DNA of 32,000 nt from Guillardia theta nucleomorph (lineage: Eukaryota; Protista; Cryptophyta). The DNA lies in NCBI GenBank assembly GCA_000002975.1, contig AF083031.2, forward strand, positions 60,001 through 92,000. The letters run 5' to 3'. Below, in pieces: positions 17,701 through 27,700 of this stretch. A program made the translations under genes and the position numbers. Position 1 is the first letter of the stretch. Every line of letters begins with the position of its first letter. The notes under the pieces are model-generated. The model ran no database searches, had not been told where the DNA came from, and saw only the letters and a program-made list of their open reading frames with translations.

Positions 17701-18128
17701 TTGGATTGCCACTTCAAACTGATGTTTTCGTTGGGGTAATTCATTATCAGCGATTAAAACACATGATTTTAGACAAATTTCAAGTTTCAAATAATAGTGC
17801 AAGAAATCATCTTACGAGACAACCTATTAAAGGAAGAAAATTAGGAGGATCTATAAGATTGGGTGAGATGGAAAGAGATGCATTATTAGGACATGGGTGT
17901 ATATTTCTTTTGCATGAAAAAATGCAAAAGTCAAGCGATCTACATGGGGTCTTTATAGAAAATACAAATTCCGACATAAAAGACTTATTTTTTAACAAAT
18001 ATAATTACAACTCTAAATTTCTATCAACTATTAAAAGTTATCCTAGAAAGATATTTGTACCTTATGTACTTAGATATTTAATTTGTGAATTGTCTGTTCT
18101 TAATCTCAACTTAAATATATTTTTGTAG
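14799..18128 (+). CDS. rpa2: RNA polymerase I second-largest subunit
   Basis: GGYFITNGTEKLIR..I.PRRN, FRSIHRG, WGYLCPIHTPDGSLCG, NQSPRNMYQCQM, GDKFASRHGQKG, FNPHGFPSRMTIG, RLGEMERD. Confidence 0.98.
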   Translation: MNFNCIKRLQSLLKIHLNSYNQIISQGFYFLRQKYFITKNFKEYNSFKGLTSIDFYLSNPIYQFGTLIHKILPRQSKELKITYQGEFIISINIQNNEKNFNLVYKEGDFPIMIKSLKCNLFGLKPHQLTEIDEEEFENGGYFITNGTEKLIRLIIVPRRNYIFTSSKISNTLRGKNFSSFACSIRCVNRYGLSRTFHLHYLTNGSILCRFIIRNQEFFFPVVIILKAIKDVSDTEIFKDITNNLHDNNMFKEVAIKLISDSYNYIKSNFRDNYLEYIGKLFKIFEKKIHLNNLETGKNLIENNLFIHVENDMNQKYLLLIYMIQKLIKSRMGLNLGENPDSIEFQEILLSGNLIGSILEKKLSANFDLIKIDEFMNIENSPIRKTKLIMKVFSNFSVGIRYLISSGNVPLIVNFEIPQTSGFNISIERNNYSRFLSFFRSIHRGKYFTTLKTTSGRKLMPSNWGYLCPIHTPDGSLCGILNHLTISSITSVVNPIERINFLKYFKKHKTIFDRLSFKNRTSIILLDGKIIGFSTEIFLKWFTDKIRCEKVSDFGIFSNSIEIVCLKNENILNLFELKIYSSEARLLRPVRWNSFNSNFNKTNSKNESSFTYNFHTIELIGSLEQSYLNIHQSIFTKKGEICLLYTHYEIDNLNIFSIVPGCTPFFDMNQSPRNMYQCQMAKQSIGIPFHNIWRKMDSKIYFLFSVQIPICRNKINQDGLGLDNFINGFNAVVGVLSYSSFDMEDAVVFNKSSIERGLGMSYIYNTSNFDVNLSMIKNLNKNYSTLHYNCLDGICNVGNALKKKDIILLNNKLVNNKLVRETTINYNNDEIASVDCVKILKNYSKIQSKHNVMIRLKSKRKPIEGDKFASRHGQKGILSFKYEVENLPFSETGIIPDILFNPHGFPSRMTIGMVIESLSGKSGALNGNFNDSSPFTSFLNCNKSYIFGEFLRENGFEFYGKEMFYSGFVGLPLQTDVFVGVIHYQRLKHMILDKFQVSNNSARNHLTRQPIKGRKLGGSIRLGEMERDALLGHGCIFLLHEKMQKSSDLHGVFIENTNSDIKDLFFNKYNYNSKFLSTIKSYPRKIFVPYVLRYLICELSVLNLNLNIFL

Positions 18129-18199
18129 CCATCTTGGCGTAAAGGTAACGCGTTGGTCTTGTAAACCAAAGTTTATCAGTTCGATTCTGATAGTTGGCA
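18128..18199 (+). tRNA. trnT(UGU): tRNA-Thr(UGU), intronless
   Basis: Acceptor GCCATCT/AGTTGGC (one U.U), D arm GCGT/ACGC, anticodon arm TTGGT-CTTGTAA-ACCAA, T arm ATCAG-TTCGATT-CTGAT, discriminator A. Confidence 0.96.
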
Positions 18200-22407: not shown

Positions 22408-23556
22408 ATGTCTAAGAATGATTTTCAAATCACCAGAATGAATGATTTAGTATGTATTGAATTTAATTCAAATGGGATTTCAAGGTTGAGAAAAATATCC
22501 AGAAAAAAAATCATTACAGAATCTAGAACATTTCCTAAAAATTATTTCCAAAAATTATTTGATTTATATTTTGAATATTCATATGCTAAAGAGTTTAAAA
22601 AATTTCCTATAAATTTAATTAATGAAAAAGACAAAAGACAGATAAAAAAATTCTTGGATGATTCGATTCAATTACGAGATATTAGACAAGTAGATCCCTA
22701 TTTTGAATCTAAGCCAACTTTTTGGATTAGAAACAATGCAATACTATTGTCATTAGAACAAATAAGAGCTATTGTTCTATTTAATAAATTATTTCTATTT
22801 GATCCAGATAACCCCAAAGTCCAACGTGCTGGAAAAATAATTTCTGAGAAATTAGAAAAATTTCAAGAAGATTCGGTTGAGGACAGGAAGACTCCTTTTG
22901 AATTTAAAGCTTTAGAGGGTATTTTTGTTAACATATGTATGAATTTGGAAAAAGATTTTTCATATCTTGAACCGACTATCTTAGAAAATCTTGATGATTT
23001 GCCAACAAAATTGACCAGTAGAATGCTTGAAGAACTACGATCTTTTAAACAAAGATTGAGTCAATTTTCAATTAGATCACAGGAGGTTCAACGGATTTTA
23101 CAAGAAACACTAGAAAATGAAAATAATTTACCAAATCACTATTTATCAATTAACAATAATAATAAAAAAATTAAACTCAAAACCACATCAGATTATTATG
23201 CAATTGAAATAATTTCCGAAGGTTTTCTCCAAGTAGTTGAACATTTAACTCATCGTGCTGAATTACTTGACAATGCAATTGATGACACTGAGGATTTGGT
23301 CAATATACGTCTAGATACCATTCGCAATAAAATTTTATTTGTAGAACTTTCACTAAACATTGTAAGCTTGACTTTATCAGCAGGCGGATTGGTTGCAGGG
23401 TTGATGGGTATGAATCTAGGAATTCCGATTTTCAAGGAGGAAAACTCGTCAACAACATTTTTCATTTTAGTAAGTTTCTTAATAATTTTCTCATCATTAA
23501 CTCTATATTTGTGGTTACTGAATTGGTGCAGAATAAAGGGTTTATATAGCATTTGA
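22408..23556 (+). CDS. mrs2: CorA/Mrs2-family Mg2+ transporter
   Basis: LRDIRQVDP, PFEFKALE, IDDTED.VNI.LD..RN, and a GMN signature (GLMGMNL) between two C-terminal TM helices. Confidence 0.95.
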   Translation: MSKNDFQITRMNDLVCIEFNSNGISRLRKISRKKIITESRTFPKNYFQKLFDLYFEYSYAKEFKKFPINLINEKDKRQIKKFLDDSIQLRDIRQVDPYFESKPTFWIRNNAILLSLEQIRAIVLFNKLFLFDPDNPKVQRAGKIISEKLEKFQEDSVEDRKTPFEFKALEGIFVNICMNLEKDFSYLEPTILENLDDLPTKLTSRMLEELRSFKQRLSQFSIRSQEVQRILQETLENENNLPNHYLSINNNNKKIKLKTTSDYYAIEIISEGFLQVVEHLTHRAELLDNAIDDTEDLVNIRLDTIRNKILFVELSLNIVSLTLSAGGLVAGLMGMNLGIPIFKEENSSTTFFILVSFLIIFSSLTLYLWLLNWCRIKGLYSI

Positions 23557-23840: not shown

Positions 23841-24734
23841 ATGAAATTGAATTGTTCTCAAAGTAAATCCCTTGTCTTCAAGAAATTCAATTTTTTATTT
23901 TCTAAATTTTCCAGGTTGATAGTTGTTAAAATAGAAAATCTTAATTCTGAACAAATAAAAAAATGCAAAAGATTATTAAACAATACTTCAATATTGATTA
24001 CTGGTAAAAATACTTTAATTAAAAAAGTACTCAGAGATAGATTGAAGAACTCAACACTGAGCAACGAAATTTTAACGAAAATTAATGGAAATGTAAGTTT
24101 TATTTTCACAAATGAGGATCCTTTTTTTATCCAAGAAATTTTGAAGAACAACTCTCTACCTACTGCTGCCAAGATTGGTCAAGTTGCACAATCAGATGTT
24201 TACTTAAGCCAGGGATTAACAAATATTTCTCCAGATGGCATTGGTATATTTCAATCATTAAATATACCTACCAAAATTCTTAAAGGACAAATAGAAATTA
24301 TAACAAATTTTAAAGTTTTAGAAAAAGGTAAAAAAATAAATGAAGCAGAAGCTACATTATTACAAAAACTTAATATATTACCCTTTTATAATGAGATTAA
24401 AATCATATCATTTTATGAAAATGGAAAATCATATGATCCCTCAGTGCTTAACTTTAATGAAAGTATGTTCGATAAAAGCTTTAAAGACTGTTTATCTTCA
24501 ATTGAATCATTATTAGAAAAAATATGCTTTCTTCATGAAGATGTGATTAAAAGGTTCATATTAAATACTAAAAGAAATATCAAATTAATATATAATTATA
24601 CAAAATTTCCTTTATTTGATAATCAAATTATGGAGAACAATCGTTTTCAAAATAATATCGTGCTCGATAAAATTACAGAAAAAAATGAAGAAAAATCTTC
24701 GAGCTCGGAATTAGTTTTAGATCTATTTAATTAA
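23841..24734 (+). CDS. rla0: 60S acidic ribosomal protein P0 (uL10)
   Basis: GKNTLIKK, GNVSFIFT, AAKIGQVA, FQSLNIPTKILKGQIEI, EATLLQKLNILPF. Confidence 0.96.
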   Translation: MKLNCSQSKSLVFKKFNFLFSKFSRLIVVKIENLNSEQIKKCKRLLNNTSILITGKNTLIKKVLRDRLKNSTLSNEILTKINGNVSFIFTNEDPFFIQEILKNNSLPTAAKIGQVAQSDVYLSQGLTNISPDGIGIFQSLNIPTKILKGQIEIITNFKVLEKGKKINEAEATLLQKLNILPFYNEIKIISFYENGKSYDPSVLNFNESMFDKSFKDCLSSIESLLEKICFLHEDVIKRFILNTKRNIKLIYNYTKFPLFDNQIMENNRFQNNIVLDKITEKNEEKSSSSELVLDLFN

Positions 24735-24811
24735 ATAATAAATAAATTTTAATATTTATTGAACCGTGGCTTTTTTTGAATAATCATATATTCATATATT
24801 TTAGTTTAAAT

Positions 24812-25480
24812 ATGGTTGTGGTTGAGTACATAGGTACTTTTATTCCAAACAAATTGATTATGTCGGACTCGAGTTATACCCATCTTGGACCTTCTAAGAA
24901 TAAAAAAAAACATTTATCGGTTATTCCAAATCCCAATACAAAATTTAATGATTACGATTTAGGTAAGATGATTTTCCTACTTTTAATACTGTTGAACTCA
25001 ATCAGTATTTTGAGAGTGATGGAGAATCAATTGTATTTTAAAATGTTTTTTTCTAATGAAATGCATTGTCCTGCTTTTGGGAGTTTAAAAAGATGTAGGA
25101 TCATTATAATCTATGCAAAAGTTTCTATCATTTGTTGTGTAATCAATGCAATCTATAGCTACTTAATCATGATCAACTATCATTTTTTCCATAGATTTGC
25201 TCTAAAGTGTTTTGCATATTACGAAAGTCCTTTCTGGTTCTTTGTCGGACTCGAATGGTTCAAATTGTACCATGAAGTATGGAGGTGGACAGATGATACT
25301 GGAGCTTCAGGTGAATTCACAGCTGATGTAATAGAGCGAATAGATGCTAATTTCGGATTATACCTTACAATGAGTGCATTTTCAGCTGCTGAATACCAAA
25401 AGATAGTGTTTTTGGCGCCTTTATTTGTAATTTCGAGGGAAGTCTACGCTTTGGTTTCTAATTTTTTAGATACCGAATAA
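24812..25480 (+). CDS. Four-TM membrane protein with CPxxGSxxRC loop; MARVEL/synaptogyrin-like; paralog of 27233-27700
   Basis: The track start at 24776 is a TTG; ATGs lie at 24812 and 24860. Four hydrophobic segments and HCPAFGSLKRC. Less AT-biased than its neighbours. Confidence 0.75.
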   Translation: MVVVEYIGTFIPNKLIMSDSSYTHLGPSKNKKKHLSVIPNPNTKFNDYDLGKMIFLLLILLNSISILRVMENQLYFKMFFSNEMHCPAFGSLKRCRIIIIYAKVSIICCVINAIYSYLIMINYHFFHRFALKCFAYYESPFWFFVGLEWFKLYHEVWRWTDDTGASGEFTADVIERIDANFGLYLTMSAFSAAEYQKIVFLAPLFVISREVYALVSNFLDTE

Positions 25481-25753
25481 GAAAAATCTACGGTTAGATC
25501 AACAAAGTTTTCAATATAAAAAATCGAATTGTCTATAGATTAAATTGACAAGTTTATAATTGAAGAATATAAGAAGAAACTTTAGGTAAGGAATAACTAT
25601 TTTTCTAAAATTATTAAATGTTTAAATTGAATTCTAGGCTATATATTTTAATCTTTTTAAGTAAAATTATAATCTTGATTATTTAATTTTAATGATTGTA
25701 GATCTATCATATTCTAAAATTCACATGTTGTCTTTGAAAAAAAATGATAGAAA

Positions 25754-27193
25754 TCAAACCATAAATGATTGTGTTTTAATTTTATTGGAATTTTCAAAAA
25801 TATTACTTAAAATTACAATATAAAAATGAACATAAATGAACTCATATATTCCGATATATTTTCTTAATGTTTTATTATAAAAAAAAACACTTTTCAAAAA
25901 CTTATTTTCTTTTTTTGAATATATTATTTTTTTACAATCTAAAAATTCATAGGATAACTGATAAACCTTATTAATATATGTTTTATTTGATGAATTTAAG
26001 ATTTTTGAATAAATAATATTTTTAGTTTTAAATAATGAAGATAATATAATGTTTTTTTGTCCATTCATAATTTCGTTACAAAATTTAATAGATATCTTAA
26101 AATAGTAAGTAGAATAAAATATTCTGGCAAAAAAAAAACTGAAAGTCTCATTAAAATAATTAATAGATTTTTGGTGTGGAATACTCATGATAATATATTC
26201 CATATGCTTATTAATTCTTATGAAATGAATTACTATCAAAAAAAATTTCAAATATTCCATTTTAAAAATTTTTATTAACCATGATTTATCAATTTTTATT
26301 TCTTTTATTTCTAATATTTTTATAATTGTAAAATTATTAGTTTTTATATTATCTAAAAATGTGTTTTTTATTTTTTTAGCATTGATAAAACTAAATTTTC
26401 GATTGATACATAATTTTATATGTTTTTTAAAACTAAAGTCATTTCTTAAAATATTTAATTTTATCATATTTTTACTTTTTTTAAATTCATAATTTTTTTC
26501 TTCAGTTTTAGTATGAATAGAAATTCTAAGCTTATAATTACAAGTTTGAAATATATTGAATTGAAGCAATTCTTCATAAATTAATAGTTGTTGGTTATAA
26601 TTAATCATAAATGACCAAATTATGGAAAAAAAATTTTCATATTTACTTCCTTTAGTTAAAAAACATCTGTAACTTAATTCAAAATAATTCCATATAGCAT
26701 TTTTTTCTTTTAAATTACAAAAAAATTGTCTTATTTTTATATCATATCTAATTAATTCAGTTAACCATATTAAAGATGTTATAACCGACAAAACAGTTCT
26801 GGAATTTAATTTTGAAGAAAATGAAAATATTGACATCTCAAATGGATAACCTAAAGTTTTTAATATTTTATAATAATCGAATGCGAGATTTGTACTCAAA
26901 TTACAATTATAATCTAGTATCATAATCATTTTTATAATTATAATTTTTAAACCTATATTTTTTTCATATCTAAACATTTTTTTATCGATTTTAATATTGT
27001 AACAAAATCTCTTAAGAAAATTATCAATTTTTTTTAAAGACTTGGATATAAAATTTTCTTCATTAGTCTTTTTTGAATCGTATTTTTTAAAGCCTGATAA
27101 TATAAGTTTAGATTTAAGTCTAAAATTATCTTCATTTAAATGATATTTATGATTAGGTAAAATTGAAATTCGACCTTGTTTGATTTTATTCAT
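25754..27193 (-). CDS. ndc80: Kinetochore protein Ndc80/Hec1-like (calponin-homology head)
   Basis: FISKSLKKIDNFL ~ FIQQCIRQLCEFL, ILKTLGYPFEMS...SLIWLTELI ~ IFKDLGYPFALS...ALVWLIDCI, WNYFELSYRCFL ~ LDYTIKCYESFM (human, recalled). Confidence 0.78.
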   Translation of the reverse strand: MNKIKQGRISILPNHKYHLNEDNFRLKSKLILSGFKKYDSKKTNEENFISKSLKKIDNFLKRFCYNIKIDKKMFRYEKNIGLKIIIIKMIMILDYNCNLSTNLAFDYYKILKTLGYPFEMSIFSFSSKLNSRTVLSVITSLIWLTELIRYDIKIRQFFCNLKEKNAIWNYFELSYRCFLTKGSKYENFFSIIWSFMINYNQQLLIYEELLQFNIFQTCNYKLRISIHTKTEEKNYEFKKSKNMIKLNILRNDFSFKKHIKLCINRKFSFINAKKIKNTFLDNIKTNNFTIIKILEIKEIKIDKSWLIKIFKMEYLKFFLIVIHFIRINKHMEYIIMSIPHQKSINYFNETFSFFFARIFYSTYYFKISIKFCNEIMNGQKNIILSSLFKTKNIIYSKILNSSNKTYINKVYQLSYEFLDCKKIIYSKKENKFLKSVFFYNKTLRKYIGIYEFIYVHFYIVILSNIFENSNKIKTQSFMV

Positions 27194-27232
27194 TTTTTAG
27201 AGTACAAAAATTATGTAATGCATATTTATAAA

Positions 27233-27700
27233 ATGGTTATAACCAAGATAACTGTGACTAGATGGATTGTAGCGATTGGAATAATGATGAACTCTATAAG
27301 GCTTTACAATTATATTAATTTTCATTTTATATTCCCCGTTCTATACAAAATTATGTGTCCAATACTTGGTTCAACGTTAAGATGCGATTCGGTGAACTCA
27401 TTAAACAAATCTGCTTTTATATCAGGACTATTGTTCTTAATACTTGATATGTTCACTTCACTTAGCGGTGAAAATTATTCAAAAATCTTTTTAAAGTTAT
27501 TACCTAAAGTATGTAGTGCTCAGTTGATTTTACATCTAATTGCAGTCTATTACATTAGTATTTGGTCAAAAGAAATTGGTTCTTTTGGACATAATAGATT
27601 AACTAGTTATCTTTTTCAAAGTGCAGTTAATATGTGTTTTTTTGCAGTATCCTGGATATTGTCTATTCTAGACTCAAATTTGTATATTTCCAATGAATAA
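27233..27700 (+). CDS. Four-TM membrane protein with CPxxGSxxRC loop; MARVEL/synaptogyrin-like
   Basis: The track start at 27176 is a TTG overlapping ndc80; ATGs lie at 27218 and 27233. MCPILGSTLRC is followed by AFISGLLFLILDMF. Confidence 0.75.
   Translation: MVITKITVTRWIVAIGIMMNSIRLYNYINFHFIFPVLYKIMCPILGSTLRCDSVNSLNKSAFISGLLFLILDMFTSLSGENYSKIFLKLLPKVCSAQLILHLIAVYYISIWSKEIGSFGHNRLTSYLFQSAVNMCFFAVSWILSILDSNLYISNE

Follow-up and report, generated by a model that had tools for sequence, protein, structure and literature searches.

What remains of a chromosome-segregation apparatus in a nucleomorph, and whether it can still grip microtubules, is the question raised by an open reading frame (ORF) of the Guillardia theta nucleomorph that a first-pass annotation took for a homologue of Ndc80/Hec1. 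Ndc80 attaches chromosomes to the fibres of the spindle, and the nucleomorph is a reduced remnant nucleus within the chloroplast of the alga. The window analysed is a stretch of 32,000 nucleotides of AF083031.2 (assembly GCA_000002975.1), which we take to be chromosome 3 of the G. theta nucleomorph; it is gene-dense, with a GC content of 15-33% and many eukaryotic housekeeping genes. Around ndc80 the GC content is ~17%, and the 479 codons of the ORF run from an ATG start without an internal stop or an intron. Its features are listed in Table 1. Elsewhere in the window, a tRNA-Thr(TGT) at 18128-18199 starts on the last base of the stop codon of an rpa2-like ORF, and a Mrs2/CorA magnesium channel lies at 22408-23556 (Pfam MRS2-like, 124 bits), mrs2 being present for all eight nucleomorphs in the gene table of Kim et al. 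2022 (PMC9548191).

Table 1. Features of ndc80 and its neighbour, in positions of the window
Feature	Position	Strand	Evidence or remark
ndc80 ORF (orf479; Gt3_479 of Zauner et al. 2019)	25754..27193	(-)	479 aa, intact
Conserved N-terminal motif M..K.K.GRI, residues 1-10	27164..27193	(-)	Alignment A2
Ndc80 calponin-homology (CH) domain, residues 36-150	26744..27088	(-)	Pfam, PDB and profile matches, model, Foldseek
E46 codon (GAA) at the human K89 position	27056..27058	(-)	K or R in 15/15 other sequences
I122 codon (ATA) at the human K166 position ('toe' lysine)	26828..26830	(-)	Lysine in 15/15 other sequences
Post-CH helical hairpin, residues 164-195 (W168, Y175, F178, L179)	26609..26704	(-)	Alignment, model
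C-terminal 284 residues at the coiled-coil position	25757..26608	(-)	AT-biased composition, not alignable from one nucleomorph-type copy to another
orf160, head-to-head neighbour of ndc80	27218..27700	(+)	24-bp gap

The proposed homology is borne out by five supports, namely Pfam, PDB, exhaustive search, profile and fold. Pfam Ndc80_HEC (PF03801) matched the CH domain with 26.0 bits and an E value of 8.3e-6 when the whole protein was scanned, above the cut-off of 25.1, and residues 30-215 alone scored 29.2 bits against the same cut-off. Only three PDB sequences matched at E<=10, all of them human Hec1/Ndc80. Exhaustive search of 1.84 billion proteins returned 10 non-self matches, nine of which are Ndc80_HEC proteins (62-139 bits); the tenth, P0125, is a repeat artefact and was set aside. 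The profile built with nucleomorph-type orthologues reached an E value of 1.7e-28 against human Ndc80 and about 1e-17 against yeast Ndc80. The structure model computed from a 16-sequence alignment had a pLDDT of 75 overall and about 75-92 over the CH-domain core, and its 13 best Foldseek matches were all Ndc80-complex entries, headed by the Hec1 CH domain 2igp (TM-score 0.77), while other CH domains ranked lower with a probability of at most 0.54. As the alignment behind the model contains canonical Ndc80, the fold evidence is not fully independent and speaks for compatibility. The order of N-terminal tail, CH domain and post-CH helix is that of the family.

An AT-biased orphan ORF could in principle score barely over the Pfam cut-off by chance: the whole-protein margin is only 0.9 bit, word-index searches with the whole protein and with residues 30-215 found the self match only, the ESM Atlas search gave chance-level matches, and a single-sequence AlphaFold model (pLDDT 36) was discarded. 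However, the word searches stayed blank because of divergence, not for want of relatives, the exhaustive search gave nearly only Ndc80 proteins, and the N-terminal motif and the head-to-head neighbour are shared with clear Ndc80 genes (122 Pfam bits). We count chance resemblance as already refuted, with a probability close to nil. Confusion with Nuf2 is unlikely as well, as the profile comparison with nucleomorph-type Nuf2 showed no similarity. The predicted protein is thus almost certainly an Ndc80/Hec1 orthologue.

Full-length orthologues of 517-544 aa occur in gene-dense nucleomorph-type loci with a GC content of 23-25%. In the contexts examined, those of the best matches other than P0124 and P0127, the loci are intronless and tightly packed with a GC content of 23-26%, and genes for TBP, MCM, ribosomal proteins and Hsp90 lie near ndc80; these contigs probably come from cryptophyte nucleomorphs. 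Of the nucleomorph-type copies aligned, that of G. theta diverges most, with 26 bits for Ndc80_HEC against 64-122 for the nucleomorph-type search matches, and it alone is without the K166 and K89 equivalents. A homologue of orf160 is also head-to-head with ndc80 in one other nucleomorph-type lineage (29% identity, E 6e-13); orf160 serves here as a synteny marker, and no functional tie to ndc80 is claimed. In five other nucleomorph-type genomes a synteny walk was started at the adjoining EF2 gene; the gene order upstream of EF2 differs there, and ndc80 was not reached. The best explanation is that ndc80 is the nucleomorph's own, vertically inherited gene; its origin was not drawn from the tree, in which the long G. 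theta branch has no reliable position. In metagenomic nucleomorph-type contigs, a Nuf2 of 332 aa is encoded 7 kb upstream of EF2, at L002:1797-2795 (-) and also in L003 and L004 (Pfam, 36.4 bits).

Several side observations concern these loci. In one lineage (L012:653-2072, L013:2368-3964, L015:99-1694), ndc80 is split in two samples by an extra T in a poly-T run after codon 279 and is intact (531 aa) in the third, and the L014 gene is similarly split; an assembly error, a polymorphism or a slippage-corrected frameshift are possible causes. In the G. theta window, ndc80 is flanked by two small hydrophobic ORFs at 24812-25480 (+) and 27218-27700 (+) for which Pfam gave no match. They have a short motif in common, CP..GS..RC (E 0.012), which also occurs in the one neighbour present in L013 (E 4e-4 and 6e-13 for the two ORFs), and they may be diverged paralogues. 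The segment 24729-25786, which holds orf222 and overlaps the final ~11 codons of ndc80, seems to be present a second time, nearly identical, at another place in the genome: the contigs of three runs cover it and continue into other sequence past 25786, those of two runs also do so before 24729, and roughly half of the raw reads disagree with the window at position 25633.

The hallmarks of the head were largely read correctly in the first-pass annotation. LGYPF (residues 114-118) and L.WL..L (residues 141-147) are both present, and the HTWP motif is indeed lost, with R132-T-V-L135 in its place; it is variably lost across the nucleomorph-type copies, where YTWP, YMWP, GRFP, QGSS or RSHQ is found. 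The downstream aromatic helix is present too, with the spacing Y....Y..F (Y170, Y175, F178), which exceeds the claimed Y...Y..F by one residue; the claimed pattern in its literal form occurs at residue 450 only. In the alignment with Ndc80 homologues, Y175 and F178 fall in conserved columns, and in solved complexes the post-CH region starts the pairing of Ndc80 with Nuf2.

The N-terminal tail is basic as described, with a net charge of +7 in 38 aa, but this is within the background of an AT-rich window in which other ORF starts carry -1 to +12, typically +5; the charge is not diagnostic and was rejected as evidence for Ndc80. The motif M..K.K.GRI is invariant in seven other nucleomorph-type sequences of alignment A2, with L018 as the exception, and the best exhaustive-search matches start with MK.K.GRI like the G. 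theta protein. A Ser after the motif creates an Aurora-type R-x-S site in some copies; the one R-x-S site of G. theta Ndc80 (residues 8-10) lies inside the conserved motif.

The C-terminal part presents a different picture. The reported erosion of the coiled coil agrees with the composition of residues 196-479, in which E+Q account for 8% and F+I+Y for 34%, against 21% and 6% in canonical Ndc80, and with the lack of any heptad window above shuffles, a crude score that was also blank for nucleomorph-type Nuf2 and may be blind at this composition. In all nucleomorph-type copies the E/Q-rich coiled-coil composition is replaced by F/I/Y/K/N, and phmmer gave no positive score between the other nucleomorph-type copies and the G. 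theta C-terminus. Among the nucleomorph-type copies other than G. theta, the C-terminal half shows 17-24% identity by forced alignment and the CH domain 34-62%. A conserved head beside a randomised C-terminal part suggests selection on the head. Loss of HTWP and the apparent erosion of the coiled coil are group-wide features common to other nucleomorphs.

What sets the G. theta copy apart is its charged surface. Residues were compared between G. theta and 15 other aligned sequences, eight of them nucleomorph-type rows (~six independent lineages); P0131, which looks chimeric with an EamA-like N-terminus, was left out. In addition to the two codons of Table 1 (K166 to I122, K89 to E46), K146 is replaced by N102, K123 by I80 and H176 by R132, while K115 is kept as K72. 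The other nucleomorph-type rows keep the lysine at K166 and K89 in 8/8, at K146 in 7/8 and at K123 in 5/8, and in G. theta Ndc80 the 3 positions to either side of the K166, K89 and K146 sites are free of basic residues. As a set, the canonical basic toe and E-hook residues are accordingly not retained in G. theta, K72 apart, but are present in most other nucleomorph-type copies. The codons of I122, E46, N102 and I80 are each one base from AAA, and AT pressure does not favour the loss of AAA codons. Contigs of three independent runs match the window at the K166 and K89 codons, which speaks against a sequencing error there, and this explanation was dismissed. Human cells depend on K166 (PMC3078066), and it is near-universal across eukaryotes (bioRxiv 10.64898/2026.08.18.745565); no paper on its loss in G. 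theta nucleomorph Ndc80 was found in the open-access literature. The loss of the toe lysines in G. theta is a modest, testable addition to published knowledge. The predicted microtubule-binding face of G. theta Ndc80 is remodelled, its charged surface being its particular feature among the nucleomorph-type copies, and the first-pass inference of kinetochore-microtubule attachment is weakened for this species because the canonical microtubule-binding lysines are gone.

These losses also bear on the reading that the gene is a decaying relic, an Ndc80 orthologue under relaxed selection that still folds without coupling to microtubules in a nucleomorph dividing by constriction. G. theta keeps only 3 of 6 conserved basic and 4 of 7 acidic columns, as compared with 5-6 and 6-7 in most of the other nucleomorph-type copies, and its terminal branch is long (2.4 changes per column, the median being 0.26). 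The poly-T split seen in two samples of another lineage, the nuf2 gene reported as a pseudogene for a single strain of C. paramecium and the low read depth over ndc80 point the same way. However, 479 stop-free codons persist in a region of ~17% GC, the hydrophobic core is kept in 30 of 34 conserved columns and the N-terminal motif remains invariant with other copies, while P0127 is also without several conserved basic columns, so that G. theta is not the only copy with charge turnover. Decay is an unlikely account of the gene.

As for expression, a single contig of run X1 spans the whole ORF at a depth of 264, against 1299 for rla0; the contigs are strandless, and the uneven depths led to the guess that this run is RNA. 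Runs X2 and X3 cover the ORF in part. In the raw RNA run X12, plus-side reads accumulate towards the 3' ends of genes on the plus strand; minus-side reads over ndc80 are sparse, with a depth of 0-2 that rises to about 5 at the stop, and fewer than the reads that run the other way. The gene is probably transcribed, at a low level. Minus-direction reads of X12 reach a depth of 17-28 over orf222 (24686-25409), which could reflect a long 3' extension of ndc80 or reads of the duplicate copy.

Both the gene and the first-pass inference had already been published. Douglas et al. 2001 (cited in PMC9252888) proposed that a relict mitotic apparatus exists although no spindle is visible, Zauner et al. 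2019 (PMC6559170) used Phyre2 to assign Gt3_479 and HAN_1g89 to the Ndc80 complex, and Kim et al. 2022 (PMC9548191) entered an NDC80-like ORF for Chroomonas, Hemiselmis and five Cryptomonas nucleomorphs in a table whose G. theta cell is blank. The present ORF is Gt3_479 by name, chromosome (as read from the name) and length, not by accession. Among the partners that the first-pass annotation suggested looking for, nuf2-type ORFs, CENP-A and alpha-, beta- and gamma-tubulin are on record in the last two sources. The supplement of PMC9548191 lists cenp-A, tubA, tubB and tubG in 8/8 cryptophyte nucleomorphs and a gamma-tubulin complex component as well. Kim et al. recorded nuf2 in 6/8 genomes and scored G. 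theta 0, and Zauner et al. (PMC6559170) described Gt2_338, grouped with the ORFs called nuf2 by Kim et al., as a second Ndc80-complex protein. In the portions of the gene tables of PMC9548191 that the analysis covered, no Spc24, Spc25, Mis12 or CENP-C linker is listed.

On balance, the Ndc80 encoded by the ORF probably still works with Nuf2 as the head of a much reduced outer kinetochore, by which CENP-A chromatin would be joined to a small number of short microtubules. The protein would be made and pair with the nucleomorph-encoded Nuf2 through its post-CH helix, the pair would sit at the CENP-A centromeres of the three small chromosomes, and the head would bind short microtubules of nucleomorph alpha/beta-tubulin grown on gamma-tubulin. 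In G. theta this binding may be weaker, or may proceed via K71/K72, K78, R132 and the tail, perhaps matched to divergent tubulins. The retention of K166 and K89 across the group, together with that of all the tubulins, supports microtubule attachment in cryptophytes generally. The case for a working kinetochore is weakened by the spindle that has not been seen in dividing nucleomorphs (PMC9252888), the loss of K166, the missing coiled-coil signal and the lack of a chromatin linker in the gene-table portions covered. For the cryptic kinetochore-microtubule system of the first-pass annotation, the identity of Ndc80 and several partner genes are supported; a working link may persist, less surely in G. 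theta given its lysine loss. More tentatively, the G. theta protein might be maintained and expressed and work without K166, K89 and K146, either on a surface co-evolved with its tubulins or in a partition free of microtubules.

A repurposed, microtubule-independent role has also to be weighed, in which Ndc80-Nuf2 would tether centromeres to the envelope or dock a kinase such as Mps1, and elongation of the envelope would separate the chromosomes. Such a role would suit a fold kept without its toe lysines, a tail motif conserved where the coiled coil is not, the spindle never seen (PMC9252888) and the entry of kin(mps1) for G. theta (PMC9548191). However, K166 and K89 are kept by the other nucleomorph-type copies, three tubulins are retained in 8/8 genomes of the same gene table, and direct evidence for an envelope partner was not found, which leaves this role rather improbable. 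If the more tentative reading of a protein that works without K166, K89 and K146 is right, G. theta Ndc80 would be a natural test case for the least that a kinetochore needs. Nucleomorph chromosomes separate with no spindle in view, and a hidden kinetochore there is best sought with Ndc80 as the marker; the lysine-keeping nucleomorph copies set against the lysine-less model species G. theta offer a testable contrast of both species and residues.

In comparison with known systems, Gt3_479 (PMC6559170) carries the same identity, and the main text of that study gives no residue-level analysis. CMESO_279, HAN_1g89, CPARA_1gp070 and the Cryptomonas copies form an orthologous group of 442-537 codons by the gene lengths listed in PMC9548191. 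The metagenomic nucleomorph-type copies have the N-terminal motif, the CH domain and the eroded C-terminal half in common with G. theta. Human Hec1 and yeast Ndc80 (2igp, 2ve7, 9n9g, 5tcs) show the same order of tail, LGYPF/WL CH domain and post-CH aromatic helix. In contrast to them, G. theta has a tail of about 36 aa instead of about 80, is about 160 aa shorter, and is without a recognisable coiled coil or loop and without an identified Spc24/Spc25 partner; relative to human Hec1/Ndc80 it is also without K89, K123, K146, K166 and HTWP. Naegleria Ndc80 (bioRxiv 10.64898/2026.08.18.745565) provides a precedent, its toe and the tubulins having diverged and K89 and K146 having been lost. K166 is nearly universal in that study, yet it is lost in the G. 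theta nucleomorph Ndc80.
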